A stretch of 64,000 bases of DNA from sequence record MZ475892.1. The stretch is one strand, 5' to 3'. How positions within the stretch are numbered: the first letter of the stretch is position 1; each line of letters opens with the position of its first letter. Positions 24,355 through 57,908 of this stretch are shown piece after piece. The notes beneath the pieces are model-generated. The model ran no database searches, was not told where the DNA came from, and worked only from the letters and a program-made list of their open reading frames with translations. The translations under genes were made by a program, and so were the position numbers.

Positions 24355-24377
24355 TGTTATTCTCCTCTGTTAGGCAC

Positions 24378-24385
24378 AAATTAGC
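24378..24385 (-). promoter_or_regulatory. GCTAATTT putative late promoter
   Basis: Exact motif between a terminator and the PAAR ATG (24 nt upstream). Confidence 0.6.
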
Positions 24386-24403
24386 TTTATACGCGACAGA
24401 AAC

Positions 24404-24430
24404 AAAAACGGGCAGCCTAATGGCCACCCG
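24404..24430 (-). terminator. Rho-independent terminator
   Basis: - strand CGGGTGGCC-ATTA-GGCTGCCCG-TTTTTGTTT. Confidence 0.75.
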
Positions 24431-24453
24431 GTTCTTGCGCTTGGATTTTGTCG

Positions 24454-24615
24454 CTATTCCCACATCCCTCGAACGTGTGCCACTGTGCCCTCAAGCACGT
24501 AGCCGGAATGAATAGAGGAAGGATAGACTGCCTGAGGTCCTTCCTGTAACGATAACAACCGACCAAGCATTGCGATTGCTATCAGCGACAATATGAGCAG
24601 TACAATCGTCATCAT
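24454..24615 (-). CDS. Putative 53-aa single-pass membrane peptide
   Basis: Translated by hand: MMTIVLLILSLIAIAMLGRLLSLQEGPQAVYPSSIHSGYVLEGTVAHVRGMWE*. Ends just before the terminator; the SD is weak. Confidence 0.4.
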   Translation of the reverse strand: MMTIVLLILSLIAIAMLGRLLSLQEGPQAVYPSSIHSGYVLEGTVAHVRGMWE

Positions 24616-24714
24616 ATCGTCGTTACTCTTCTTTTGGCCGAACGGTATTGCATGGTTTGATCAGATTACTCCGCTGCCTATCGTCCACGATCACTTAGGT
24701 TTCAGTTTCTTCAT

Positions 24715-25580
24715 CTCTTTACCGCCTGCGCTGCGGTCAAGCCGCACACCCTGCACACGAATCTAACACAAAGGGGCGGAAGAACCTTTATGCTCGAAAC
24801 ATGCACCTGGCGAAGGAGGCCACGCATCGGTGATCTGCTGGTGTTAACACACTTTTAAGGCCTTTCTTTTGTGCACCATTCAAGAGACAGGGCCACCAGC
24901 TAGTGATCTCTTTAAGGTATCGCACTGACTTGTGAACAAGTCACGGGTTGAAAACTATACACTTCCATATGCGCATCGGGAGAAACGCATAAGGCTGATG
25001 CACAGCTTTGACTAAGAAGGATTGCGCCCGTCGCCCGACTTCACTTGGGTATCGACAATCGTTCTCTCTTACTCCCTTGAGTACAGCGCAAGGAACACTG
25101 AGTCAATGAGTAGTCTGCGGGTGTTACTCACTAGAGGGTGAAAGCCTTTTAGATTCTTTATTCTGCGCAGCACCTTAATGGACTTGAATCGCCCGCTGGA
25201 GTATCCAATAAGGCCCTCTCGGTTAGGCACCTTGCTGCACAGAAAACCCGGGGAGTACGTTACCATATAAAACGACTCTCCCCAATGCATACCAGAGCGA
25301 CTTGATATGCATCAGGCAGTGAACGTTTGCAGAAGTTCAACTGCTTTGCTTCCCGCAGAACTAGAGCCACACCGTTGAGTATACGGTCCACAGTAGTTAC
25401 ATGCCTAGAGGATATTGCCTTGGAGTTTATGTCCTATGGAATAACCGGGCTCGTCGCGTCGGTGCCACAGCAATATTCTATCATGTGGTGCTGGGGTTGT
25501 TCCCCACATTATGCGATTGCTCGCAACCAGCTGGAGGTCTGCGTCCGATGAAAAGAATAACTAAGACGCAGATGAGCTTT
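24715..25580 (+). ncRNA. Candidate large structured non-coding RNA (~0.87 kb), family unknown
   Basis: No credible ORF; about 20 adjacent or nested hairpins; most non-canonical pairs read as G-U on +; GAAA and GGGA tetraloops on +. Boundaries are approximate. Confidence 0.6.
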
Positions 25581-25672
25581 TCAGAAAAAACAGCACACCA
25601 AGAAAATTGGCTAAACTCAGTGTGCGTATAGATATTACTATCTACAATTTTTATTTACAGATTTTTCTGAGA

Positions 25673-28499: not shown

Positions 28500-28991
28500 T
28501 TAGGCAAATCGCCCACCACGCCATGCGGCCTTGATGAGCAACTTAGCCACGATTTCGTTCTTCATTGTCTTTCGCTTTGCATTGCTACGGACAAATGCAG
28601 AGCCGAACTTATTCACGACAATCAAACCAACACCGCTCACGCGTATGCGTTCAATTATTCTATCGCCGTGAGATTCAAACAGAGCCTCGTCTATGGCAAA
28701 GTACATACGCATACAAAACGGTAGATACTTGTGCCACTTCTTATCAGTATTGAAATCAGCCCAGCAACTCTTAACCTCAGTGATAATCATATCGCATTTG
28801 GTATTAAGGCAGAACACGTCTGCTCTTAGGTTGCCGTGCTTAATCAAACCCAGCTCAACATGACAGGAATAACGTTTGTCAATCCAATAACGCTGAGCTG
28901 CCTCAGTGATAAACATAGTCCTATCAGGACGACTCATTGAGGTAAAGACTGCCTGTGTTTGACGTTCAGCTTTGCGGCGCTTAAAGGCCAT
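28500..28991 (-). CDS. MmcB-family PD-(D/E)xK nuclease-like protein
   Basis: LRADV...ITEVKSCWADFNTDKKWHKYLPFC..MYFA matches the MmcB pattern. Confidence 0.75.
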   Translation of the reverse strand: MAFKRRKAERQTQAVFTSMSRPDRTMFITEAAQRYWIDKRYSCHVELGLIKHGNLRADVFCLNTKCDMIITEVKSCWADFNTDKKWHKYLPFCMRMYFAIDEALFESHGDRIIERIRVSGVGLIVVNKFGSAFVRSNAKRKTMKNEIVAKLLIKAAWRGGRFA

Positions 28992-29436
28992 ACGAGTCGA
29001 TAATGTCCAGCGCCTGAGCTAAAATTGGGCGGAGTTTCTTGTCCACCTTCTTTAGAGCTTTATCAGCACTGAACCACTTACGCTCACGCATGCCTGCTTC
29101 ATCATATTCAGTCAGTTCCTGCTTGACCTTCATGATGAACCATTCAACGTTCTGGGCGCGGCCGGTCTTGCCTTTAACATACTTCATAATGTCGATGAAG
29201 TCTTTAGGCTTACCGAGAATGCCGCCTTCTTCCATGGCTTCTTTAAGCGCGGAATCCAGTGGCGTCATACCTTTCTCAACGCCACCTTTAGGGAATCCCC
29301 AATTGTTTCCGTGTGTGGTGCGAATCAACAAGATCTGCACTTCACCTTTTTTCTTTTTGTATGGGACAACGCCTGACTGCTTACGCGCTTTCTTTTCCGA
29401 AGGCAGCTTAGCAGAGAGTGACACATTCAGCATCAT
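28981..29436 (-). CDS. NUDIX hydrolase
   Basis: WGFPKGGVEKGMTPLDSALKEAMEEGG Nudix box. Confidence 0.92.
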   Translation of the reverse strand: MMLNVSLSAKLPSEKKARKQSGVVPYKKKKGEVQILLIRTTHGNNWGFPKGGVEKGMTPLDSALKEAMEEGGILGKPKDFIDIMKYVKGKTGRAQNVEWFIMKVKQELTEYDEAGMRERKWFSADKALKKVDKKLRPILAQALDIIDSYGL

Positions 29437-40129: not shown

Positions 40130-40807
40130 TCAGTCCTCTACAATAATAAGCACAGGTCTAACAGCATCATCGAACTTGATGAACGCAGCGCCAACAAGAT
40201 AGCCACCCTTCTCTACTTGTTTCACGACAGCCTTTTCAAGATCTGTTTCCCACTTATCGCGCTGTGCGGGTTTGTAAGAAGCAAACGTCTCAGAAGCATC
40301 GTAGTAGTTATAGGTACCACCAGTAGGCATTGGGATACGTGCAAGGAACTCTAAGCGACTACAGTTCTTGAACGGGGTCTTGCGTAGCTCTTGCGTCAGC
40401 TTGGTGTTCTCTGATTTAGAGCCAGGCACAGCGGTGAATACTTTCTTAGGCTGAGGCTCACGAGGAGCAGCAGGCATCTTCTCACGCGCTGGCGTATTCT
40501 TGTCGCTGGCTTTCTTAACACGAATACCAGAAACAGTCCCTGTGAATGGACGACTGCGACCAAGCAACGAACGTGCGGCCGTAGCGTCAACAACAAACAC
40601 AACAGACGGGTCATCACGGTGCAGCACATAGAACTTGTTACGTGCAGCGGCCTTGATACCGAATACGTCTTTGTCCTCAATATCCGCTTCGTGTTCTTTG
40701 TTCTCGATACTGACCTTGCGCTTACCTTCAAAGCGATACCAGTCGCAGTCATTGATAGACACGATAGGTGTTTTGCGTGAAGCACTCTCGCTCAGAAAAA
40801 TAAGCAT
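40130..40807 (-). CDS. Hypothetical protein, probable head-internal protein
   Basis: Starts MLIFLSESAS; carries the shared WxxFxG...DxFG domain. Confidence 0.6.
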   Translation of the reverse strand: MLIFLSESASRKTPIVSINDCDWYRFEGKRKVSIENKEHEADIEDKDVFGIKAAARNKFYVLHRDDPSVVFVVDATAARSLLGRSRPFTGTVSGIRVKKASDKNTPAREKMPAAPREPQPKKVFTAVPGSKSENTKLTQELRKTPFKNCSRLEFLARIPMPTGGTYNYYDASETFASYKPAQRDKWETDLEKAVVKQVEKGGYLVGAAFIKFDDAVRPVLIIVED

Positions 40808-40826
40808 GGTATCTCCAGGAAACGAG

Positions 40827-40850
40827 AAAGGGCCAAAACATCTGGCCCTT
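40827..40850 (-). terminator. Terminator after tail tube
   Basis: - strand AAGGGCCA-GATGTTT-TGGCCCTT-TC. Confidence 0.6.
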
Positions 40851-40855
40851 AGTTA

Positions 40856-41368
40856 TTACGATGCGAGTTCAACGTAGTCGAAGGACCATTCGATTGAGAT
40901 CGGTACAGCCTGTGCAGCACCAGAGAAGCTCAGGTCAGGAACCTGCTTAGGCCACACACCGAACACGTTGTATTCTGCAACCACAGAACCATCCATATCA
41001 AAGATACGGAAGATAGCTTTGGTTGAGTAGTCCGCTTTCTTCGCACCCAACTGAGTCTGCGTAGCACGAACAAGTTCATGCCATGCTTCCAGTTGTTTGT
41101 ACACAGCCATCTCTGAGTTCTCATTGTACTCAGTGGAGATTGTGTGCGAGAAGGTTTTACGACCCGCGTAGTTAAGCTGGTGACCGAACGCTTCTTTCAA
41201 TACTTCTTCCAGCGTTGAACCAGGCTTAACGCCAGTCTTACAGAAGATACGCAGAGTACGCGCATAGTCTGTACCACCAACTGGCGGGTTCGGAATCAGG
41301 AACTCGAAGTTGTCATCGAGTAACGGATCGAGCGTAGACGAAAATTCGTCAAGAGTTACCTTTGGCAT
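40856..41368 (-). CDS. Tail tube protein (T4 gp19-like)
   Basis: YAGRKTF...VYKQLEAWHE...YNVFGVWPKQV...IEWSFDY. Confidence 0.88.
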   Translation of the reverse strand: MPKVTLDEFSSTLDPLLDDNFEFLIPNPPVGGTDYARTLRIFCKTGVKPGSTLEEVLKEAFGHQLNYAGRKTFSHTISTEYNENSEMAVYKQLEAWHELVRATQTQLGAKKADYSTKAIFRIFDMDGSVVAEYNVFGVWPKQVPDLSFSGAAQAVPISIEWSFDYVELAS

Positions 41369-44661: not shown

Positions 44662-45762
44662 CTAGCCTCGCACTGCCTTCGCCACAGAACGCACGTTCGC
44701 CAGAGTGAAGGAGAAGGTGCTTGACAGCAACCAGCCGCGGTCAGTGTTACCCTGGTTAGCACCAGAGGTAGGAGTAGACTGCGTACCGCCACGGGTAGTA
44801 TATACCGCATGGTAGTCCTGGTCAGCCAGAACATACAACTCGCCCTGTTTCAGAACGATGTGCTCTGGAGCACGCATACCATCAGTCACCAGCTCCATAC
44901 CCAGCAGGGTACCCAGACGACCGGTGATCAGCAAATCATACTTAGACACTGGGTCCAGAGCAGAAGAGAACTGATCGTTACCGATAATGTCGTTCCAGTA
45001 GTCCCACGCCATCACGGCGGTAGAGGTCGGCAGCGGCCATGAAGCAACGCTGTTTTTCAGGGTAGACAGCAGACGCGGAGTCAGGTCACCGTGAACGTAG
45101 GTGATCGGGTTAGCGATACCAACAGCTTCGTCACACGCTTGTTTCCACAGACGGTCTTCTGCAACCATGATAGAAGACAGGCCATCTTGCTGCGCACGGT
45201 CCAGCAGGTCGCCGTTGATCTGGTCCAGATCCATTTTGCTTACGCGGATGTTGGATTTCAGTTCGAACTCAGCCGGCTGGTAGGTACGGCCGCGGAACTG
45301 GCGGTAACCGAAATCGGTAGGACCAGTTGCGATGATTGCTTCTGCCTGGTGAATTTTCAGTTCGATACGAGCAATGTCGCCCTGACGAACGGTAGCACCC
45401 TTACAGACTTTACGCAGCAGACCAGCACGCTCAGCACGGTCTTCGATAGATGCAACGATAGAAGCACCAAGCGAGTCCCACTTAGCGCCAGAGGTATCAG
45501 CAGCAGCTTCGGCAAACAGTTCAATCTTCTCAGCTTCTGACAGACCGTTAGAAGCGTTAGACTGTGAATGAACCAGCTCACCATTTTGGAACGCGTTAGC
45601 CAGACGGCTGATCTGAGAGATCAGGTCTTTCTGGCTTGATGCGTTAATCTCACCAGTGCTTTGGCTCAGAGCTAATTCATTGCTCTTGCCGAAACGCAGG
45701 TCTTCAATCGGGGCGCCATTACGCAGAGTTACTTTCGCGCCGCGCATTAAGGAATTAGTCAT
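44662..45762 (-). CDS. Major capsid protein (HK97 fold)
   Basis: 366 aa, strongly biased codon use; follows protease/scaffold/decoration; DLLDRAQQDGLSSIMVAEDRLW spine-helix-like motif. Confidence 0.85.
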   Translation of the reverse strand: MTNSLMRGAKVTLRNGAPIEDLRFGKSNELALSQSTGEINASSQKDLISQISRLANAFQNGELVHSQSNASNGLSEAEKIELFAEAAADTSGAKWDSLGASIVASIEDRAERAGLLRKVCKGATVRQGDIARIELKIHQAEAIIATGPTDFGYRQFRGRTYQPAEFELKSNIRVSKMDLDQINGDLLDRAQQDGLSSIMVAEDRLWKQACDEAVGIANPITYVHGDLTPRLLSTLKNSVASWPLPTSTAVMAWDYWNDIIGNDQFSSALDPVSKYDLLITGRLGTLLGMELVTDGMRAPEHIVLKQGELYVLADQDYHAVYTTRGGTQSTPTSGANQGNTDRGWLLSSTFSFTLANVRSVAKAVRG

Positions 45763-46583: not shown

Positions 46584-48650
46584 TTATGAGCAGCGCAGAC
46601 GGGCCAGTTTATCTTCGAACGAGTCAGTGGAAGCTGAACTCTGTGATTGAATAGGTGCACTATCTTCGTCACCCAGAAGCTGCGCTGCAACGCTTGGTTG
46701 CTGCGGCTTAACAGGTGCGGTGACCTGCTGTTGAACTACAGGCTGAGCCTGCTGCACGGTACCGGCTGCGGCTTCGATTGACTGTGCAACTTCGTTCTGT
46801 GCAGTTTCAGACATAGACATAAGAGCCTGTGCTTTTGCCAGAGAAGTTGTCAGGAAATCTTTACCATGCGCGATAAACGCGTTTTGAATCAGCGCGTTCG
46901 GGTCTTTGATGCCTGCGGCAGACAGAGAGCGAACGAGAGAATCAACGATCGGGTTACGCACTTCACCCCAGTAGTTTTTGGTGATACCCAGCTGAGCAGA
47001 AGACAGGGCAGCAATCAAACGTTCCTGATGGGAAGCAACAGTGTCGTTGATAGTAGACGATACGCTGGTGGTAGCTTCGTTGATGCGAGCATCAGATTCA
47101 GCAACCAGCAATTTGTCTACAGGCATTTCGATTTGATACGGCATAAAGCCATACGCTTCGACTGTACCTACAACACCGCTTTGAACCAGGCTGTGTGAAA
47201 CGGCACGGATGAAATTATCAGTTGCGAAAGATTTACGCGCAACTTCTTCACCAACAACGTTAGACACAGAGTTGAACGTGGCGCGAGCAACTGGCTGGCC
47301 GTCGTAGTACATGTGTACCGATTCGACTTTACCGCCGTTAGAACGGCTGAGGCTTACCAGGGTCGGGTCCAGTTCGCCGTACTGAGCTTGTACGGTAGAC
47401 AGGCTGTCGAAGGTGCGATTAACGACTTTAGATTCGGAATCGAAGTCTTCGTCGTCGAGGTCGAGATCATCTTCTTCCAGATCTTCGTCATCGTCGAGGT
47501 CTTCGTCTTCATCATCAGCGCCAGACTCAGAATCGAAATCTTCGTCTTCGTCGTCTTCGCCATCCAGATCGTCTTCATCCAGATCTTCGTCGTCGCCTGC
47601 ACCAGATTCGGAGTCGAAATCTTCGTCTTCCAAATCTTCGTCATCTTCGAGGTCTTCGTCGTCTTCGTCGTCCAGATCATCTTCATCCAGATCTTCGTCG
47701 TCGAGGTCATCCTCTTCGTCTTCGTCGAAGTCATCTTCATCGAAGTCGTCTTCATCTTCATCACCATCAGATGATTCAGAATCAAAGTCGTCGTCAGAAT
47801 CTTCGTCTTCGTCGTCGAGGTCCAGATCGTCTTCGTCCAGGATATCAATGTCGCTGTCGCTATCATCGTCACCGGAGTTAGATTCAATCGGCTCGTCGAC
47901 CAGTGCCGCAGAGCAATGCGCACAGAAGACAGGCTCTTCATCGGAGCTTACAGTAAACGGCTGTTCGCATTTAGCGGAGCAGCTATAGATGTGAGCTTCG
48001 ACGGTACCGTCAGCGGCAGCAGAAGACAGAGCAGTAACAGCTTCAGGAGCGTCCTGAGCATCACAGCTATCAACAGCCTGGCCGGTGTACGGGTCGAATT
48101 TGGCAACAGTAGCAGCGTTGAAGCTACCAGTGTTGGACAGCGCTGTGAACGTTTGAGCACCAGACAGGGCCTGCGCGAAGTTGCGTTGAGCTTCTTCGGC
48201 AGTCTCGCCAGTAGCGATCAGGCTCGCGTGTTCAATCTGTTCATCAGCGTTTGCGCTCTCAGCAAGGAACTGTGATACGCGTTCATCAGTGATTTCTGAC
48301 AGGTCAGCAGAGCACGACGGGCAGCAGCCCTGAACGAGCGAAGCACTGTCGCTGATAACGTGGCTACCACAACCATCCAGACAGATAGTGTAATGCGCCT
48401 TCACGTCACCAGCAGAAGACTGAGACTGAACTTCGGCTTTCTCAACCAAATCAGGATGCTCATCCAGCAGTTCGTTACCGCCGGTTGGGTTGTAGAGGTC
48501 AGCGCCACTTTGCGAAGCAAAGCCCACACCGTCAGAAGAACCATAAATCATTAAGTTCTGGCCTAACGCAGTGCGACGAAAGTTCTCTACTGCCTGATTA
48601 TGGTTTTTACCGACACACAGGATACCCGCGAGTTGGGTAATCTTTGGCAT
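46584..48650 (-). CDS. Prohead scaffold/core protein with two Zn-ribbon motifs and a long acidic tract
   Basis: Start MPKITQ at 48650 (SD GAGG); CLDGC..CPSC and CSAKC..CAHC; D/E tract. Confidence 0.65.
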   Translation of the reverse strand: MPKITQLAGILCVGKNHNQAVENFRRTALGQNLMIYGSSDGVGFASQSGADLYNPTGGNELLDEHPDLVEKAEVQSQSSAGDVKAHYTICLDGCGSHVISDSASLVQGCCPSCSADLSEITDERVSQFLAESANADEQIEHASLIATGETAEEAQRNFAQALSGAQTFTALSNTGSFNAATVAKFDPYTGQAVDSCDAQDAPEAVTALSSAAADGTVEAHIYSCSAKCEQPFTVSSDEEPVFCAHCSAALVDEPIESNSGDDDSDSDIDILDEDDLDLDDEDEDSDDDFDSESSDGDEDEDDFDEDDFDEDEEDDLDDEDLDEDDLDDEDDEDLEDDEDLEDEDFDSESGAGDDEDLDEDDLDGEDDEDEDFDSESGADDEDEDLDDDEDLEEDDLDLDDEDFDSESKVVNRTFDSLSTVQAQYGELDPTLVSLSRSNGGKVESVHMYYDGQPVARATFNSVSNVVGEEVARKSFATDNFIRAVSHSLVQSGVVGTVEAYGFMPYQIEMPVDKLLVAESDARINEATTSVSSTINDTVASHQERLIAALSSAQLGITKNYWGEVRNPIVDSLVRSLSAAGIKDPNALIQNAFIAHGKDFLTTSLAKAQALMSMSETAQNEVAQSIEAAAGTVQQAQPVVQQQVTAPVKPQQPSVAAQLLGDEDSAPIQSQSSASTDSFEDKLARLRCS
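47428..47873 (-). repeat. Asp/Glu low-complexity tract punctuated by four DFDSES motifs
   Basis: About 150 aa almost entirely D/E/L/F. Confidence 0.9.
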
Positions 48651-48695
48651 GGTTAAAACCCTCATAAGGAATGAAGTCGTTGAATCGACAGGTTG

Positions 48696-48728: not shown

Positions 48729-49859
48729 TTAGACTTTTCTGCTATCAATATCTGACTGAGGAATATAGCGATTTTCGAAGTATTTATTCACTACTTCGAC
48801 ACCGTTTAGCGTATAAACGTTACGCAAACTATCTCCCCATACCATTAGTTCTGCCAGCGTTGCAAAGTGCTCCGTAGGCACGGATTTAATGGTCAGTGCA
48901 TTGTTCGAATCAGGATGGATTCGCTTACCACGAATGGCCTGATCAAACTTCATACGGTCTACGTTACGCAGCATAGTATGGTCCACAAAGTGAGCCAATT
49001 CATGCGTCATAACGTGGGCCATACTTTTGCTGTTATATCCACCCAGCAGACGAACAAGCTGTTGTGGACTAATAGCGATAACACCGTACATAAAGCCACG
49101 AATCATGTACGTGCTAATGTGAGAACCACCTACATCGTTACCTTCCTGCCCGCCCAGAATAGAAACGTACAGACGCTTAAACGGCAGATTAACGTTCAGC
49201 CCTACAGCAGGCATTACGTTGTCCTGGATATCCTTTAGCACGAATGCTGGTGGGCTAACACCGTTGACTGAGATGTTTAGGCCAGGGATATTCAGCTCAT
49301 CTGCACCACGCACTTCGAGATGTACCGTACCACATTTAGGCAGTGGTTGAATTGCGTAGTTGTTTGGAGTACCACCAGCATAAGCAATATCAGAGTATTG
49401 CAGAGGCGTGAATTTACCGAACTGAGGCCTGTCAAGTTCTCGACGTTGACGCGCTTCTTTGGACGCACGATCATCATCGATAGGAGTATCAACAGGAGGT
49501 TTTGGCTCAGGTTCAGGCGGTGGGATTGGCACTTCGGCAGCGGCAGGTTTTGGAACTTTCGCAGGCTTAGGCACTTTGACAGGCTTAGGCTTAACAGACT
49601 TCTCCTCGAGTGGAGTAAAGTCAAAGCTATCAAACAACGCATCAGGCTGAGCAGCAAAAGGCCTGCTATTAGCCAGTATCATTCCAGCGCTCTCCCCGCT
49701 GATTGCAACAGCTTGAGGGTACTTAGGGTGAGCGATGTAATAGAGGTCATCGTTAACTTGATGGAGACCTACGACCTCGCGTGGCTGCATACGCACACCA
49801 TTTGAAATCATAGTATCTCCACCTAAGTAACGGACGAATTTGTAGTCCGTTACATCCAT
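48729..49859 (-). CDS. HExxH zinc-metalloprotease-like protein
   Basis: Start MDVTDY at 49859 (TAATG coupling); VMTHELAHFVDH...EHFA; Pro-rich linker. Confidence 0.65.
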   Translation of the reverse strand: MDVTDYKFVRYLGGDTMISNGVRMQPREVVGLHQVNDDLYYIAHPKYPQAVAISGESAGMILANSRPFAAQPDALFDSFDFTPLEEKSVKPKPVKVPKPAKVPKPAAAEVPIPPPEPEPKPPVDTPIDDDRASKEARQRRELDRPQFGKFTPLQYSDIAYAGGTPNNYAIQPLPKCGTVHLEVRGADELNIPGLNISVNGVSPPAFVLKDIQDNVMPAVGLNVNLPFKRLYVSILGGQEGNDVGGSHISTYMIRGFMYGVIAISPQQLVRLLGGYNSKSMAHVMTHELAHFVDHTMLRNVDRMKFDQAIRGKRIHPDSNNALTIKSVPTEHFATLAELMVWGDSLRNVYTLNGVEVVNKYFENRYIPQSDIDSRKV

Positions 49860-50638
49860 TAACGCATCCGCAGCAGGTGTTCTTTGTACGTTGCAGCACA
49901 AGCAAATGCTGGGTCATCCACAGAGCTACACTCGAAACCAGTGAGACCCTTACAGTCACGATACACCAGGCGGCCTGTACGTGCATCCAAATACGTAGGC
50001 TTGTTGAACGCTGTGTGCGAACAGAAGTTACGATTCTTCGGCGTTACCATCTGACCACAGATACTGCATTTATAAGCACGGTAGGTTGTGCCCTTGCTGT
50101 ACGTGTTCAGTTCACCGCTGAGAATACGGTCACAACGTTCCTTACAGCGCGTGCGGTCAAACGCCAGCAACAGAGTCAGACGCGCATGATTGCCACGGAA
50201 GTTTTTCAGCTTAGACAGGTTCGAGTCAAAGATCATGCCCATTGCTTGACGATAGTCTTTGTTGTTGTGCTCGATAAACGTCGGCTTACCAATGAACGTC
50301 TGATATGCAAGGCGTCCTTGATCAGGGTTAAACGTCAACCATTCCTGTAAGCTGAATGCATCACCGTTAGTGTTCGGCAACTCCGTGATGTTTACCACAA
50401 CAGGCGCAATGATATAGTCACGGATATCACGCGAGGTGTTGTACATCTCAGCAGCTTTAGGCAGCCACACGTTAACGTCGAGGTTAAAAGATCCCGTCTC
50501 AATACCGAAACGCGAAGCATCAACACGAATAGACTTAGCGTTTCGGCTAACATCTTCTTTGTGCATATCAATCGCGTTCAGTCCGACGAGGCCCATGTCT
50601 GAGGTATCAAACGACTCAGACTTGATGAGCTGGGTCAT
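49859..50638 (-). CDS. Prohead maturation protease
   Basis: NTNGDAF...TFIGKPTFIEH...YSKG plus CSICG..CSH, resembling phage capsid maturation proteases; upstream of scaffold and MCP. Confidence 0.75.
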   Translation of the reverse strand: MTQLIKSESFDTSDMGLVGLNAIDMHKEDVSRNAKSIRVDASRFGIETGSFNLDVNVWLPKAAEMYNTSRDIRDYIIAPVVVNITELPNTNGDAFSLQEWLTFNPDQGRLAYQTFIGKPTFIEHNNKDYRQAMGMIFDSNLSKLKNFRGNHARLTLLLAFDRTRCKERCDRILSGELNTYSKGTTYRAYKCSICGQMVTPKNRNFCSHTAFNKPTYLDARTGRLVYRDCKGLTGFECSSVDDPAFACAATYKEHLLRMR

Positions 50639-51066: not shown

Positions 51067-51921
51067 TTAACCTCGAAGTGCACCACGCGCCCAAGACTTA
51101 GCGAGAGCCAGAGTCATACGGCTAGGGTTCTGGAGTTTGACTTCACCCCGATGAACAGCAGTGAACGGTTCATTAGGGTTCTCGCTGCGTCCAGAACGAT
51201 ACGCAGATTCATTGAAGCCATCAAACAAAGTAACCAGCCAGCCAGTTGACTTGTCCGAGCATTCGCCGCACTTGTTGTCCCAGCTAATCTTACCGCATGT
51301 ACGGCCACCAGCATTGATAGCGTATGACACACGGTCTTTGTCTGAGTAAACGTCCTTAGCACGAATGGTCTTGAACGTCACACGAGACGAGGACTCGGAG
51401 CGTGGCATCATGCGTGCTTTAATCGCTTCTGTATCAATAGAGGACCAGAATGATTCAAACAGCATACCCAGCTTCTGATCGATAGGCAGCTTGAGTCCAT
51501 TGATTTGCGCAATGGTACTGGAGCTGTCATTGATAACGCGATTCAGGAAGTAGCCACCAATGATTATCGGCAGCTGTGTTCCCTGTGAGCCTACAGTGAT
51601 ACCAGATTGCTTGCAGTAGATCTCAGACAGACCGACAGCGAGACGCGCAAGAACCTTGAACGTCTCTTTCTCTGTCGTGTTTGCGATTTCAGTATACAGA
51701 CGCGCGGCAATGTTCGGCACGACTGTACGCTTGGCAACGCTGGCAATATCTTCGGCTGTGATAGTCTGACCAAGTTTCTTCTTGGCCGCTAACGCAAAGG
51801 CGTTATACAGGCTGGCTTTGTTCTCCGACGTCAGGGCCTCGTTCAGCTTGCTGATCGTCGTCTCCGCGCTGCTTTTCAGACTCGGAGTTTGAACTGTTTT
51901 GAGTCTCGCAACTTTCGGCAT
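51067..51921 (-). CDS. Hypothetical protein
   Basis: 284 aa; SD AGGAG lies inside the end of the GT gene. Confidence 0.6.
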   Translation of the reverse strand: MPKVARLKTVQTPSLKSSAETTISKLNEALTSENKASLYNAFALAAKKKLGQTITAEDIASVAKRTVVPNIAARLYTEIANTTEKETFKVLARLAVGLSEIYCKQSGITVGSQGTQLPIIIGGYFLNRVINDSSSTIAQINGLKLPIDQKLGMLFESFWSSIDTEAIKARMMPRSESSSRVTFKTIRAKDVYSDKDRVSYAINAGGRTCGKISWDNKCGECSDKSTGWLVTLFDGFNESAYRSGRSENPNEPFTAVHRGEVKLQNPSRMTLALAKSWARGALRG

Positions 51922-53035
51922 TGGAGTTTTTCTCCTGGTTGAGGGCTTGCTTCGCTAAAATCCCAAGCAGGCCAGAGGCTTTGATTTCTGTCTCAACGTC
52001 AAGCCCACGATGCAGACTGAGTTGAGCTAAATAGTTCAATGCAGGTTCGACCATATTAAGATTACGACAACCCCAATAGGCGCATTCGTAACATAAGTCT
52101 AAATTAACAGAGGTCTGGTCAAACAAGAAACTTTTTGGATTCTGTTGCGCAACAGACAGTCCCTGTATAGCCATGCCCACAGAGTTGATCATATCGTCAC
52201 GGCGATAGAAAATATCAGACAGCATCGCGTAGCACTCAATACGATCAGAGCGGGCTGCAATAGCACGGTAGCAGCAGTTAACGGCTTCCTGAATAAAGCC
52301 CTGCTTGAACGTTGCTTTTGACAGTTCCAGATTAGCCACAGCAACATAGTCAGACCACGTTGCGAGTTTGGTGAGACGTGCCACTTCGGCGCGTGCATCA
52401 TCAAGCAGGTCAGCACGGTCATAGTATGCAACCGAGTAGCACAGCTCACGCGCATAATAGAACGAGCAGCGCTGGTCACGAGGCCAATCGCCCGCATCAC
52501 GCGCCAGCTCCATGAGATAACCACGAGGCTTAGTGTGATCTGGGAAATGGTCAGTAGCGAACTCAGCACGCACAGTATGCGGTGGGTTACCTTCACGAAT
52601 ACGCATCAACACTTCATGCGCACGGTAACGCCACGTATATGCTCGACTCTTGTATGCTTTCATCTGGTCATACTGGCTATCGCCGTTACGCATCAGAATC
52701 CAAACACCATCAGCCTGTTCAATGTCAGGCATCTGACGTAACTTCTCAACCCAATCTGGATCGTCGAAGCGTTCATCAATGTCCAGCCAAACGATTAAAT
52801 CATCTTCATGGAATGGCGCAGCGGCCAGGTCGCGACTAGCACCCAGATTGCGTTCTTCGGAGATGTCCGTAGAGTGATACAGCGCTGGGTGCGCGAACTC
52901 GGAAACAATCTGAGTCGTTGCATCAATGCTGCCTGTGTCCACGATACTGATAGCATCAGCAGCAGACACATGCTTCAACCACTCGGCCATATTCTTTTCT
53001 TCATCACGGCAGATAGCCGCTACGCAAATTCTCAT
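51803..53035 (-). CDS. GT2-family glycosyltransferase with TPR-like C-terminal region
   Basis: ICVAAICRDEEKNM...IVDTGSIDAT, WLDIDE, WRYRAHE, FYYARE, helical repeats. Confidence 0.85.
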   Translation of the reverse strand: MRICVAAICRDEEKNMAEWLKHVSAADAISIVDTGSIDATTQIVSEFAHPALYHSTDISEERNLGASRDLAAAPFHEDDLIVWLDIDERFDDPDWVEKLRQMPDIEQADGVWILMRNGDSQYDQMKAYKSRAYTWRYRAHEVLMRIREGNPPHTVRAEFATDHFPDHTKPRGYLMELARDAGDWPRDQRCSFYYARELCYSVAYYDRADLLDDARAEVARLTKLATWSDYVAVANLELSKATFKQGFIQEAVNCCYRAIAARSDRIECYAMLSDIFYRRDDMINSVGMAIQGLSVAQQNPKSFLFDQTSVNLDLCYECAYWGCRNLNMVEPALNYLAQLSLHRGLDVETEIKASGLLGILAKQALNQEKNSNAESCETQNSSNSESEKQRGDDDQQAERGPDVGEQSQPV

Positions 53036-53046
53036 GAGTGCCTCTT

Positions 53047-53955
53047 TTATACAAGAACGTTACCGCTATCCCACCACTTCTTGCCATAGATTTCAGACAG
53101 GCGGTAGTCAAGCACGATTGGTTGGTCAAGATCGACCTGAAGGATATCGCGACCTAGTGCAGCGCTATAAACTGTTTTCTCCTCAGTGTATACGCGTATC
53201 TCTAGTTCCATGTCGCCTTGCGAATACTTGGGAACGAACGGCACATTCAGATCGCCGTTGAACCCCTGACCGAGCGTATCGTCAAAGTAAGTAGACATAC
53301 GAATCTCGGTACCCTGATTGATAATGGTGGGTGCATACACCATGCGATTGTTATACGCCGTGTAGTCGGCCACCGTGGACTGTTGAATCAGGCGGCGCTT
53401 ATAGATGCGCGTTACGCCTTTGTCATCCACTACCGTACGATACTGATTGTAGAACCAGTTGATCTCATAGAACTTAACTGGCTTGAGGCCAGCAGATGAA
53501 ACCAACGAGGCAGTCATACGGTGATAGGTCTTCTCCGTATTCAGACGATAGAGCAGAATCTTAAACGCGTACCATTGGTAAACGTCTAACGTGATTGAGC
53601 CTGCATCTGATTGCTGAGTACCGTTGGTGAGGATATACGAGAAGCAATCGCCACCAACATAACCACTACGGGGATCGTAAATGAACGCATCACTAAAGCT
53701 ATTCAGTTCGACAGTACCCAACAGTGGGTCGCTCACTTTGATTGCAGCAAGGCGCCAACCACGCTGGGCTGGAACCTTGTCGAGAACGCCTTCTGTGGGA
53801 CTGTGACCTGTTAACTCGTCGCGTGCGCCTTGCAGAATCTGATCGATAGTGATTTCAGTTTTACCTGAGTTCTTCACACGTATCGTTCTGTTTGGTGCTA
53901 TTGGCTTATAGTTGCGCCAGTAGTCAAACGTACAAGGCAAAGAGAGCATAGTCAC
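53047..53955 (-). CDS. Virion protein with Ig/cadherin-like (Big_9-type) domain
   Basis: GTVELNSFSDAFIYDPRSGYVGGDCFSYILTNG. Confidence 0.65.
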   Translation of the reverse strand: MTMLSLPCTFDYWRNYKPIAPNRTIRVKNSGKTEITIDQILQGARDELTGHSPTEGVLDKVPAQRGWRLAAIKVSDPLLGTVELNSFSDAFIYDPRSGYVGGDCFSYILTNGTQQSDAGSITLDVYQWYAFKILLYRLNTEKTYHRMTASLVSSAGLKPVKFYEINWFYNQYRTVVDDKGVTRIYKRRLIQQSTVADYTAYNNRMVYAPTIINQGTEIRMSTYFDDTLGQGFNGDLNVPFVPKYSQGDMELEIRVYTEEKTVYSAALGRDILQVDLDQPIVLDYRLSEIYGKKWWDSGNVLV

Positions 53956-55922
53956 TCCAACTTATATTTACGTCGGAACTCTGCTAGACCCATGACAGGA
54001 ATGCCTTTGTCCATGGCCTTCTGGAGTTTCGCAGAACCCGAGCCTGGGTCTTTGGCGATAAGAATGGTTGTATCTGCTTTCATGCTATCTGAGGCAGTAC
54101 CACCAAGCTCAACGATACGCTGCATCAGTTCACGATCACGAATACCTGTGAATGCAACGTTAACGCCTTTCAGCTTAGAACTCTTCACCTGAACACGTTT
54201 CGGTGCAACCAGCTTAACACCGATTTCATTCGCAAGCTGATACGCAGAGACACACGCAAGAGCAATGTCAGGCGATTTTGTTTTGATGCCGTGAATATCC
54301 GAGATAGCTTTAGCGAGCGCCAGAGGATTCTGTTTGCGCACTAGCTTGTCAAGGTCAGGCACGCTATCGACCACTTTATCAAACGTAGTGTTAGCGCCAC
54401 GCATGAAGTACGGCGAGCACGCTTTAAGCCACGTATTGACAGCAACGCCTGAGCGTAATGCTTTGAGGTCTTTCGCAAGCTGAGCACCACGCGAGTCACC
54501 AACCACTTCACGCAGCACACCGATAGTTGCAGCGAACAAACGGGCAGGTGTATCAATGCCAGACTCTACGAGCAGCTTCGACGTACTCGGTCCTGTGTTA
54601 GCAACGTCCAATCCTTTGAGGAATGAACTGAGCAGTCGAGTAGTGCCTACCTCAGTCTTGGTATTGATAACGAACTCAACGCCATTGACTTTGTAAGGCA
54701 CATCAGGCAGCTTTGGCTTCTTCGCAGGCTTGAGAATCTCCATGATGTATGGGATTACCTTACCGCTACGAATCAGCTTGACCGTAGCACCTGGGCCAAG
54801 AGGCTTCTTAGCATGAGGCGCAGTCGCTTTGCCTTTAGGTTTGAGGTAGCCGTGCTCAACATAGAATCCATTGTGACCATTAGCACGCTGTACAGTGACG
54901 CCGCCAGTCATCAGCGTTGGTGGGAAGATGATAACAGGCTGCAAGATACCGTACTTGGTCTCTTGGTAGATAACATCTTCTACCTTAACGATCACTGTGT
55001 CAGCTTCTGCATTCATTTTGAACTTGAATGCGTGCTTTGGATTAGATGCAGTCGCTTTAGGGCTGGGTACATCTTCCGTGAGTACAACACCATCCAGCTC
55101 GTAGATAGCTTTAGACAGACGGCGCTCCAAGAACGCAATCAACTCGTCTTCTGAGTTGAAGCGCTTTGGTGGCGTATGCCTAACGACTTCGAATCCCCAG
55201 CGCTCCAGCAGGGCGAACTGCTTAGACTGCTTGAGCGTAGCACCGTCACCGCCGATGATAGAGAAGCACACCATGCGGACGTACTTGAACTCGGACGCTG
55301 TTTCAAAGTTACGCACAAGTCCAGACGCAGCGTTACGAGCGGCCTTGAAGCGACCACCAGCAGACTCATGCATCTTAGCCATGAATGTCTTTTGAGGAAT
55401 GAGTGCCTCAAAGCGCAACACCGTCTGACCTCTGACTGGAATCTTTTTAGGGATTTTCATCGCAGGGATATGATGGGATACGTCTTTACCGTGAGTAGCA
55501 TCACCACGGGTATAAGCCTTTACAGGCACACCGTCTTGATACACAATCTCAAGGCTCAAGCCATCGAGCTTGTCGGTTGCAACGTAGTCCACATCTTTCG
55601 ACAGTGCTTTGGCAATCTGCTTCGAGCCTGCCTGAAACTGATTGAGACTTGCCATAGGTACAGGCAGCTTAACATCAGCATCATCACGCTGACCAATCTT
55701 ACGAGCCAGCTTCGACTTAGGCCATTTAGCGTCGATGTAGTTACGGATTGAATCGTACACTGCATCGCTCACCAGACCTTCATCATCCGTATGATATGCG
55801 TTGTCCAGAGCGGTTATTAAGTTACGCACTTGCGTCTGGTTCAAGGTGTCCAAGACCTTTTGAGGGTTCTTGGACAGTTGCTTGAGACTAACAGAGGCAG
55901 AAATAGAAAGCCTTACTTTCAT
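53952..55922 (-). CDS. ligA: NAD+-dependent DNA ligase
   Basis: YH...VSDAVYD, KLDGLS, TRGD, ELDGVV, AFKFK, LIRSGKVIP, and C-terminal BRCT (VAFTG..GG). Confidence 0.95.
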   Translation of the reverse strand: MKVRLSISASVSLKQLSKNPQKVLDTLNQTQVRNLITALDNAYHTDDEGLVSDAVYDSIRNYIDAKWPKSKLARKIGQRDDADVKLPVPMASLNQFQAGSKQIAKALSKDVDYVATDKLDGLSLEIVYQDGVPVKAYTRGDATHGKDVSHHIPAMKIPKKIPVRGQTVLRFEALIPQKTFMAKMHESAGGRFKAARNAASGLVRNFETASEFKYVRMVCFSIIGGDGATLKQSKQFALLERWGFEVVRHTPPKRFNSEDELIAFLERRLSKAIYELDGVVLTEDVPSPKATASNPKHAFKFKMNAEADTVIVKVEDVIYQETKYGILQPVIIFPPTLMTGGVTVQRANGHNGFYVEHGYLKPKGKATAPHAKKPLGPGATVKLIRSGKVIPYIMEILKPAKKPKLPDVPYKVNGVEFVINTKTEVGTTRLLSSFLKGLDVANTGPSTSKLLVESGIDTPARLFAATIGVLREVVGDSRGAQLAKDLKALRSGVAVNTWLKACSPYFMRGANTTFDKVVDSVPDLDKLVRKQNPLALAKAISDIHGIKTKSPDIALACVSAYQLANEIGVKLVAPKRVQVKSSKLKGVNVAFTGIRDRELMQRIVELGGTASDSMKADTTILIAKDPGSGSAKLQKAMDKGIPVMGLAEFRRKYKLE

Positions 55923-55961: not shown

Positions 55962-57908
55962 TTATGATGCGATAGGGTCCTTGTTGACCTCGTAATCTTC
56001 CGCCATGTCGTACACGCGATTGAACAGCTTAGGCGCCATATCTTTCACATGCTCGGCATAGTCAAACAGGTTCTGCTTACGCGCACGATTGACACGCACC
56101 TGACGTACTTCGTCTGGGCTATTCGTAATGTCGTACAGCGTATACACAACGATGTTATCGGAGGAGTTATGAGTGCTTACCTTGAGGACTACCCAATCGC
56201 GTTGCAGTTTAGCATCAGCCTTGAAGCGGAGGACGTCGCCCTCTTCGGCCTCATCTGCACGCGCATCAGGAGTAGACTTGTTAGTTGCGGCAATCTTCTT
56301 CGCAGTCTCGGCAGCTTCTTTCTCTGCCTCAGCCACATCAGAATCTTGGTCTTCATCCGCTTCTGTTTCGTCTACGGCGTCAGAGGTATCGTCATCGGAG
56401 TCGTCGGCTTCTTCGTCGTCATCTCCAGACGTATCTTCCTCGTCATCTCCTCCGTCGTCGGCATCATCAGATTCCACATCGGAGTCGTCATCTGAATCGT
56501 CGGAGCTATCATCCCCATCCTCATCATCAGACTCTGAATCGCTATCGTCAGCATCTTCTTCTGCATCTGGATCGTCCTCTTCCGTTTCGTCGTCTGGGTC
56601 AACGTCACCGCCTTCAGGGTCATCCTCTTCCAGCTCGGAGTCGTCGTCGAGGTTATCCTCTTCTGAGTCGTCTGGCTCATCATCCTTGGTTGAGTTCTTA
56701 GCAGAGCCGCCTTTCTTGCGTACCTTAGACTTAGGAGCAACTTCCTCTTCGTCATCATCTGGTTCATCAATGTCAGACAGGTCAAGCTCGGAATCGACTT
56801 CGTTGTCTGCGCTATCATCACCGCCGAACATAGAGCTAACGGTATCCTCCAGACTGAACACATCACCTGCAAACGGGCTGCGTTGAAGAATGTCTTCAAG
56901 GCGCTGCTCATCTAGGTCCTGCTCAAGGTCCAGATGTTCTTCGATAGCATCATCGAGGTTTTCATGCTCAATGACTTTAGGCAGACGACGACGATCATTC
57001 AGGCCAGGGTCGTCAGAGTAGATGGTACGCTGTGGTCCTGTAGGCGCTTCAATCTCACCGTCACGCACTTTGCGTCTGAGGTCACGCATCTCTGCGCTAC
57101 GCTCACGCGCTTTCTTACGTGCTTCCTGTGCGAGTTCCTTGCGCTGTTGTTTACGCTCAAGGGAAGATGCCTCACGACCTAAACGTTCAGCTTCCTCAAG
57201 TTCACGGCCTTCGCGATGGCGAGCGCGACGAACCATACGACGATACTGTTTGATAGTATCAACATCAACACTACCAACAGGCCAGTCATTAAGAGGCAGA
57301 ATGTTTGTGTCATGCACAATCAGATCGTACTGAGCATCATCAACCTTCAGGAACAGGCCTTCTGTGTTGATAACGATACCGCCTTTGCCTTGACGCAAGA
57401 AACGCACGCCAATCATATCGTTGCGGTACATCTTATAAATACCCTTGGTAGTCTTCACAGGATATTCATTGCCTGGCACCATGCGCCATTGATAGTTGGC
57501 AAAGTCAACGCCGTACACAGCTTCTGACTTAACCGATTTCGGCATAAAGCGAGGAGCATCAAACAGGGTGCGATTGATCTTACGCTCAAGGCTCTTAGCG
57601 CCAGCAACGCGTGCAGTAGTACCAGCCTCACGTTTAACCACAGCTGGTGGCTTACGCAACTTAGAGCTACGTTCAATGAGGAACAGACCTGTCGTTTTGT
57701 CGAGAGGGAAATCGACGTGCGGCATGTCTGGGAAAATCAGTGTATAACGACCACCATTCCTGAGTGGCAGAATACCAAAAGTGTCGCCATTACGAATCAT
57801 ACGTTTGTGTGATCGCTGCGTCACCTCTCGTCCACGTGAACCAGTAAACTGCATCCACGCGTACTTCGATACGGCATCTTCATATGATGCGGATTCGGAG
57901 AGTACCAT
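55962..57908 (-). CDS. Acidic/basic block protein, probable head-internal protein
   Basis: 648 aa; starts MVLSESAS; two copies of the shared domain, an R/E coiled coil, and a long D/E tract. Confidence 0.6.
   Translation of the reverse strand: MVLSESASYEDAVSKYAWMQFTGSRGREVTQRSHKRMIRNGDTFGILPLRNGGRYTLIFPDMPHVDFPLDKTTGLFLIERSSKLRKPPAVVKREAGTTARVAGAKSLERKINRTLFDAPRFMPKSVKSEAVYGVDFANYQWRMVPGNEYPVKTTKGIYKMYRNDMIGVRFLRQGKGGIVINTEGLFLKVDDAQYDLIVHDTNILPLNDWPVGSVDVDTIKQYRRMVRRARHREGRELEEAERLGREASSLERKQQRKELAQEARKKARERSAEMRDLRRKVRDGEIEAPTGPQRTIYSDDPGLNDRRRLPKVIEHENLDDAIEEHLDLEQDLDEQRLEDILQRSPFAGDVFSLEDTVSSMFGGDDSADNEVDSELDLSDIDEPDDDEEEVAPKSKVRKKGGSAKNSTKDDEPDDSEEDNLDDDSELEEDDPEGGDVDPDDETEEDDPDAEEDADDSDSESDDEDGDDSSDDSDDDSDVESDDADDGGDDEEDTSGDDDEEADDSDDDTSDAVDETEADEDQDSDVAEAEKEAAETAKKIAATNKSTPDARADEAEEGDVLRFKADAKLQRDWVVLKVSTHNSSDNIVVYTLYDITNSPDEVRQVRVNRARKQNLFDYAEHVKDMAPKLFNRVYDMAEDYEVNKDPIAS
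56335..56823 (-). repeat. Asp/Glu/Ser low-complexity tract
   Basis: About 160 aa dominated by D/E/S. Confidence 0.85.

Follow-up and report, generated by a model that had tools for sequence, protein, structure and literature searches.

A conserved Ser-x-Ser-Ala leader on unrelated proteins of Erwinia phage pEa_SNUABM_34: a candidate signal for head assembly

Background

In phage T4, the internal proteins and the enzyme Alt carry a capsid targeting sequence that is removed by the protease gp21 (Mullaney and Black 1996, cited in PMC10052503). In the jumbo phages SPN3US, phiKZ and 201phi2-1, a protease trims many head proteins, some of them bearing N-terminal propeptides 20-24 residues long, and ejection delivers many packaged proteins into the host. 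Here we analyze a stretch of 64,000 nucleotides (referred to as the window) from sequence record MZ475892.1, in which several otherwise unrelated proteins, an NAD+-dependent DNA ligase among them, begin with a short leader of the form hydrophobic-S-x-S-A. The window is 100% identical to the genome of Erwinia phage pEa_SNUABM_34 (MZ475892.1, 264,306 bp), a jumbo myovirus near the genus Snuvirus. Nearly all of its genes are minus-strand genes, forming a block of head, tail and baseplate genes with a few enzymes among them.

The wider PaBG/Lu11-like group includes PaBG, Lu11, NCTB, the Dickeya phages JA and AD1, and the Erwinia phages Y3, Yoloswag and Alexandra (PMC7412058). An earlier note, made from the letters of the window, had proposed that the leader is a capsid-targeting signal. 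We examined this proposal by a genome-wide motif scan (341 annotated genes, taken at their annotated starts, with the expectation derived from the internal rate) and by sampling orthologues from approximately 40 related genomes and contigs. Positions are those of the window unless marked as record positions; a window position equals the record position minus 62,000. A literature search for this phage group found no description of the motif or of a packaged ligase, NUDIX enzyme or topoisomerase.

The explanation that we favor, at roughly even confidence, is that the leader is a short propeptide with a prohead-protease site, placed on head-internal cargo as in T4 but with a different motif. The motif is present on at least six proteins, its serines and alanine are conserved among diverged relatives in four unrelated families, and its core recurs in the prohead protease, the capsid protein and a scaffold-like protein.

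Results and discussion

An N-terminal motif on unrelated proteins

Four window genes, all on the minus strand, encode proteins with the strict motif. The ligase, LigA (53952-55922, 656 residues), opens with MKVRLSISAS (residues 1-10, 55893-55922), which lies N-terminal of domain Ia. Two proteins with a KMPT-N domain (PF20294) follow the same pattern: KMPT648 (55962-57908, 648 residues; domain at residues 16-81, E 3e-17) opens with MVLSESAS (57885-57908), and KMPT225 (40130-40807, 225 residues; domain at residues 21-85, E 6e-19) with MLIFLSESAS (40778-40807). The fourth is a NUDIX hydrolase of 151 residues (28981-29436; Pfam NUDIX 2e-14 at residues 22-140; phrog_10313), whose gene start overlaps the stop of the gene upstream. 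The first three leaders stand exactly as the earlier note had quoted them; for the NUDIX enzyme, the quoted MLNVSLSA is obtained from the second ATG, whereas the annotated start gives MMLNVSLSAK (29407-29436). The fifth quoted N-terminus, MTQLIKSESF of the prohead protease, is also present, but it contains S-x-S-F and not S-x-S-A. Thus all five N-termini are confirmed, but two of the five belong to KMPT225 and KMPT648, which are paralogues because the KMPT-N domain directly follows the leader in both. The observation that tail and baseplate genes lack the leader holds without exception among the sheath, tube, baseplate and fibre genes of the window.

The genome-wide scan adds two further strict carriers, a SNF2 helicase (record 148488-154322) and the product of the gene at record 206628. 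The leader thus occurs at the extreme N-terminus of a ligase, a NUDIX enzyme, two KMPT-N proteins, a helicase and the record 206628 protein, which are otherwise unrelated apart from the KMPT-N pair, and the Pfam domains of the carriers begin downstream of it. These six carriers among 341 genes, with the motif at residues 3-11, compare with 0.46 expected (P 9e-6); counted as five independent families, the probability is 1e-4. S-x-S-A alone is found in eight genes genome-wide against 2.0 expected (P 1e-3). The carriers are concentrated in the minus-strand structural block (11 versus 2, Fisher P 0.003). By itself, the enrichment is suggestive of a common signal, not decisive.

Two other origins of the leader were considered and rejected. 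A Sec, Tat or lipoprotein signal peptide does not fit on inspection: in place of a hydrophobic core of about 10 or more residues the leaders hold two to four hydrophobic ones, Cys and twin Arg are absent, and the carriers are enzymes of cytoplasmic type. Nor can the KMPT-N domain be the cause of all the leaders, since just three proteins have the domain (62.9, 68.4 and 72.8 bits in the three window proteins, against a Pfam cut-off of 28.9) and one of the three is without the leader. We found no literature on the KMPT-N domain.

KMPT648 contains a very long Asp/Glu-rich low-complexity stretch at approximately residues 330-560. The KMPT225 gene sits between two tail-tube paralogues, and a GC-rich hairpin followed by a T run (40808-40860) separates it from a tail-tube gene, so that KMPT225 may be made in smaller amounts than the tube protein. 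Downstream of the NUDIX gene come genes for a MmcB-like repair nuclease and a thymidylate kinase (28500-29436, minus strand), amid baseplate genes. The order MmcB-like nuclease then thymidylate kinase recurs in Y3 and PaBG; in PaBG a KMPT-N/SprT gene lies just upstream of the MmcB-like gene, and the NUDIX gene (gp60) is elsewhere.

Conservation of the motif among relatives

In KMPT648, both serines and the alanine are retained in all nine distinct orthologue N-termini, with Glu (2), Val (5) or Leu (2) at x. In KMPT225, the same three positions are retained in 10 of 10, followed by a linker that is variable and a domain that is conserved. The helicase keeps them in six of six, with Thr, Val, Ala or Arg at x. 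The NUDIX family keeps them in three of three, always with Leu at x, while the first residues of the leader vary; this leader is retained in an Alexandravirus-like phage and in Y3. Members of the record 206628 family retain hydrophobic-S-L-S without the alanine, again with a variable linker after the motif, and the family of its neighbor, record 207297, retains S-x-S-A in four diverged forms. A Glu-specific site, read as S-E followed by S, can be rejected. SES triplets do cluster in head-module proteins, but orthologues place V, L, I, T, A or R at x, and Glu is therefore not required.

PaBG, whose capsid protein is 45% identical to that of pEa_SNUABM_34, carries the motif on the helicase gp202 and on a topoisomerase IB, gp84. 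Its ligase, NUDIX enzyme and KMPT-N/SprT protein are without it.

A second and longer leader was also noticed, of the form M-x-(L)-I-K-I-N-L, in which S-x-S-A is reached at residues 11-19 of otherwise non-homologous proteins. It is found on the genes at record 147622, 148448, 167066 and 168078 of MZ475892.1, and on PaBG gp83 and gp219. PaBG gp83 is a virion protein by mass spectrometry and shares this opening, except that Ala replaces Ser. Homology between gp83 and the MSLIKINL-type proteins of MZ475892.1 was considered and rejected, as blastp finds none; only the N-termini are alike.

The core motif in the protease, capsid and scaffold-like proteins

The prohead (head maturation) protease, of 259 residues, is encoded at 49859-50638 on the minus strand (phrog_18299, 1e-125), in the head module and approximately 4 kb upstream of the capsid gene. 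Its own S-E-S-F lies at residues 7-10 (50609-50620, minus strand). Among 62 homologues, with identities down to approximately 30%, 39-41 have S-x-S-F within the first 3-25 residues, preceded by a leader of variable length and sequence and with 13 different residues at x. In an AlphaFold2 (AF2) model with a predicted local distance difference test score (pLDDT) of 84, residues 1-18 are disordered. Pfam searches and sequence searches of the Protein Data Bank (PDB) returned nothing for this protein, and gp21 was found by fold search only: the three best Foldseek matches are chains of T4 gp21 (5jbl), at a weak E of 0.017 and a probability of 0.9, followed by far weaker matches to assemblin-type proteases. 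The model thus points to a gp21/assemblin fold, nearest to T4 gp21 by a weak match. H124 and S181 are among the invariant columns.

The major capsid protein (44662-45762, minus strand, 366 residues) has an HK97 fold and is annotated as major head protein in relatives. Its AF2 model (pLDDT 81) has approximately 75 extra residues ahead of the HK97 fold, and Foldseek matches it to HK97 capsids and encapsulins at 1e-9. Among 94 homologues, the segment matching window-phage residues 56-84 is hypervariable in length and sequence. Nevertheless, S-x-S-A occurs in this segment in 21 of the 94, in 21 different contexts, and the relaxed form S-x-S-(S/N)-A in 32. Composition-preserving shuffles give 4.2 +/- 2.0 occurrences of S-x-S-A (maximum 13 in 2000), and the remaining 31,595 residues of the homologues contain seven. 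These matches lie at residues 60-79 (chain length about 366), or 16-21% of the chain, and the PaBG capsid protein is reported to lose approximately 20% of its mass on maturation (PMC7412058). In pEa_SNUABM_34 itself, the corresponding candidate processing site is at residues 64-71 (45550-45573, minus strand), and the model has its lowest internal confidence at residues 68-72 (pLDDT <50). A second candidate site, L-S-x-S-T-G-E at residues 32-38, is highly conserved (candidate processing site at residues 32-36, 45655-45669, minus strand), with S-x-S in 78 of 95 homologues and x variable. L-S-E at capsid residues 74-76 was rejected as a maturation site, since the family does not conserve it.

The gene between those of the protease and the capsid protein encodes a scaffold-like protein of approximately 690 residues (46584-48665, minus strand) with CxxC pairs and a long acidic repeat. 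In an alignment with Y3, JA29 and PaBG, the Snuvirus, Y3 and JA29 proteins retain S-x-S-(S/A/T) sites at the borders of their domains. The protein contains four S-x-S-A matches against 0.46 expected, two of the four falling within CxxC motifs. Its Asp/Glu-rich stretch, at approximately residues 260-410, contains repeated D-F-D-S-E-S units and is flanked by the CxxC pairs.

The protease, capsid, scaffold-like and helicase evidence lay outside the original observation and supports a link between the leader and head maturation.

The SNF2 helicase and the virion proteins of PaBG

The only carrier with particle data behind it is the helicase, a protein of 1944 residues with SNF2-related and helicase C-terminal domains and the N-terminus MMNQIISTSAT. 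The motif is kept in every one of the 12 orthologues, out of 13, whose columns were counted, and the thirteenth, from Y3, shows it too. The PaBG orthologue gp202, which bears the motif, is the 221-kDa band of purified virions. Helicases are not usually abundant in virions, and this one brings to mind the large antirestriction helicases that other phages package.

This evidence has two limits that bear on head packaging. The helicase may sit in the tail or on the surface of the virion instead of being head cargo. Also, the PaBG gel identified only 14 abundant bands and did not cover the ligase, NUDIX or KMPT-N proteins. In the papers on Dickeya and Eneladusvirus phages, we found no virion proteomics.

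A lineage-specific leader on the DNA ligase

The ligase is by its domain matches a complete LigA. Pfam calls the adenylation domain (3e-26) and the BRCT domain (4e-8), phrog_3869 matches at 5e-153, and the KxDG motif is present at K118. The OB fold scores 28.9, under the Pfam cut-off of 32.9, and the Zn-finger and HhH parts are not called by Pfam; the alignment to E. coli LigA (2owo, 6e-23) extends to residue 471. In this alignment, residue 30 of the ligase corresponds to residue 9 of the chain, so that approximately 21 residues stand ahead of domain Ia.

The leader is present on the ligases of Snuvirus and of two lineages that are approximately 80% identical. The ligases of Alexandravirus, AD1 and Y3 (72% identical) start with MQISLKRL, that of one relative (a 259,700-bp contig) starts with MAVQLSLKRL, and NCTB, PaBG and two metagenomic relatives have unrelated ligase starts. 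Because the sister starts share the MQISLKRL-type opening, the Snuvirus leader is an insertion of eight residues ahead of a common start. The leader is absent from the sister genera, and given its restriction to Snuvirus and the lineages at approximately 80% identity, packaging of a ligase cannot be a group-wide strategy. The earlier note's interpretation is partly supported: a link to head maturation is backed by the S-x-S core in the protease, the capsid linker and the scaffold-like protein and by the virion-detected helicase orthologue, whereas targeting by the leader and packaging of the ligase are putative. The roles that the earlier note suggested for packaged enzymes, circularising or repairing incoming DNA and degrading signalling nucleotides, are hypothetical.

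A proposed processing and targeting code

We propose that the leader, consisting of Met, one to five residues ending in hydrophobic ones, and then Ser-x-Ser-Ala, would be a head-assembly signal of this phage group. A gp21-like protease would recognize hydrophobic-(x)-S-x-S and cut next to the second Ser. It would trim itself, the N-terminal extension of the capsid protein and the scaffold-like protein. Proteins with the site in their first dozen residues would enter the prohead, be trimmed there and exit with the DNA, and the leader itself would bring them into the capsid. The predicted cargo would comprise the LigA of the Snuvirus lineage, the NUDIX enzyme, the two KMPT-N proteins, the SNF2 helicase and a few proteins of no assigned function. 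The carriers are, on this evidence, probably cut by the prohead protease and carried inside the capsid.

A bolder version, which we advance only tentatively, is that the PaBG/Lu11-like branch, including the 'hairy' myoviruses of Erwinia and Dickeya, has an undescribed Ser-x-Ser protease, that a leader of 6-10 residues loads a co-injected toolkit for DNA handling, and that the ligase was recruited recently by way of the insertion. The toolkit in this version consists of the SNF2 helicase, NUDIX and KMPT-N proteins, together with LigA in Snuvirus and topoisomerase IB in PaBG.

Several observations, besides the limits of the particle data and the restricted distribution of the ligase leader, weigh against a propeptide with a prohead-protease site. 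Known relatives of the gp21-type protease cut after Glu, and the SPN3US protease cuts after A-X-E; Ser at the cleavage position would be a new specificity for this type of protease. The capsid site of pEa_SNUABM_34 reads V-H-S-Q-S-N-A-S and is not the exact motif, the PaBG capsid linker reads P-S-A-R, and the exact motif is missing in approximately two thirds of the capsid homologues. Two of the carriers belong to a block of small, possibly early genes on the plus strand. The statistics are also weaker where they are independent. The idea arose from the window, so only the rest of the genome is an independent sample, and there the strict motif occurs twice against 0.38 expected, a borderline result (P 0.056). 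Finally, in an all-versus-all comparison of N-terminal 18-mers, similarity was not above that of internal segments, and the case consequently rests on the specific motif and its conservation.

Alternative explanations

These last results are what would be expected if the leaders had no common function, being a by-eye selection, from approximately 60 starts, of N-termini rich in Ser, a single paralogous pair and a ligase that gained its insertion by chance. Ser-x-Ser is over-represented 1.5-1.9-fold in the proteome generally, KMPT225 and KMPT648 are indeed paralogous, and the ligase leader is lineage-specific. Chance of this kind, however, does not readily account for a strict motif at 13 times its expectation genome-wide, or for four unrelated families in which S, S and A are invariant and x varies. 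The start of the NUDIX leader varies while the motif stays, the linkers of KMPT225 and record 206628 vary as well, and the core is found in the N-terminus of the protease family and in the capsid linker, neither of which entered into the selection of the leaders. We therefore consider an absence of common function unlikely.

It is likewise unlikely, in our judgment, that the leader is functional without being a capsid signal, whether as a docking peptide for the sliding clamp, as the site of another protease or as a degradation tag. A candidate reader for the latter two is at hand. The third KMPT-N protein of the window (48729-49859, minus strand; PF20294, 3e-20), which itself is without the S-x-S-A leader, has the HExxH motif of SprT-like metallopeptidases, read as HELAH in the translation. 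Its gene is directly downstream of the protease gene, with overlapping stop and start codons, and its product may be a second peptidase of the head module. The KMPT-N and SprT-like domains are joined in one PaBG protein of 448 residues, and the JA29 orthologue has KMPT-N.

Clamp docking draws on the ligases without the insertion, which still open with a Gln-hydrophobic-Ser-Leu stretch. These starts appear to resemble the bacterial beta-clamp-binding pentapeptide. A clamp homologue is encoded at record 141682-142860 (blastp to PaBG gp207, 4e-26), and the carriers include DNA enzymes (the ligase, NUDIX and helicase, and topoisomerase IB in PaBG). The clamp motif, however, requires a hydrophobic residue at a position that Glu occupies in the KMPT-N leaders, and the capsid, scaffold-like and protease proteins share the core without having any reason to bind a clamp. 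For the ligase, docking to the clamp is a rival worth keeping.

A nucleic-acid signal that coincides with the opening codons (an RNA structure, for example, or a promoter or translation enhancer) would explain why the motif always lies in the first 35 nucleotides of genes, but it is highly improbable: the Ser codons differ by gene (TCT, TCC, AGC, AGT, TCA), as do those of Leu and Ala, so that selection acts on the peptide and not the DNA; the upstream regions have only ordinary Shine-Dalgarno sites in common; and x and the flanks vary among orthologues where S, S and A are fixed.

If the propeptide explanation is correct, it would provide a cleavage and targeting code for a large and poorly studied group of jumbo phages, and head-internal cargo could be predicted from sequence alone. 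It would enlarge the short list of phage-carried enzymes by an NAD+ ligase of the replicative type, a NUDIX hydrolase and a chromatin-remodeller-like helicase, and it would offer an example of a tag gained through a small insertion. If it is wrong, the Ser-x-Ser-Ala leaders are still an unexplained N-terminal signal in at least six protein families.

Other features of the window

A family-2 glycosyltransferase gene (51803-53035, minus strand) lies within the cluster of head and ligase genes, and its position is kept in Y3, JA29, NCTB and PaBG. The Ser-rich leaders could in principle be a target of this enzyme. Elsewhere, between a PAAR-like gene and a gene for a protein of 587 residues, 1.3 kb (24355-25672) are without a long open reading frame or public annotation. 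Neither a tRNA nor any Rfam match (E up to 0.1) was found in this stretch; it contains a single terminator-like hairpin on the minus strand (24409-24430).

Comparison with known systems

Encapsulins provide an analogy only. In these systems a short terminal peptide sends enzymes into an HK97-fold shell, and the capsid model obtained here matches encapsulin shells as well as HK97; the loading peptides of encapsulins, however, are mostly C-terminal and are not cleaved. Phage P1 offers a likeness in cargo. Its Dar antirestriction cargo includes a large helicase-methyltransferase, DarB, a very large virion protein of the helicase type that is carried with accessory proteins, as is proposed here for the SNF2 helicase. 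Incorporation of the P1 Dar proteins depends on partner proteins and, to our knowledge, does not use a shared short leader.

SPN3US, phiKZ and 201phi2-1 are, like pEa_SNUABM_34, jumbo myoviruses, and they have short N-terminal propeptides on some head proteins. Cleavage there follows A-X-E, whereas pEa_SNUABM_34 belongs to another group, the PaBG/Lu11-like one, and its motif is different.

The closest parallel is T4. The core motif differs, being Ser-x-Ser followed by Ala, Phe or Thr where the T4 site ends in Glu, and the cargo would differ as well, as it would include a LigA, a NUDIX enzyme and a SNF2 helicase. In both phages, however, a leader of approximately 10 residues stands at the extreme N-terminus of unrelated proteins. 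In T4 this leader shares its motif with the processing sites of head proteins, and here the S-x-S core is what the leader has in common with the candidate sites in head proteins. Both phages also encode a gp21-like protease in the head module, and the cargo of T4, like that proposed here, includes an enzyme (Alt).

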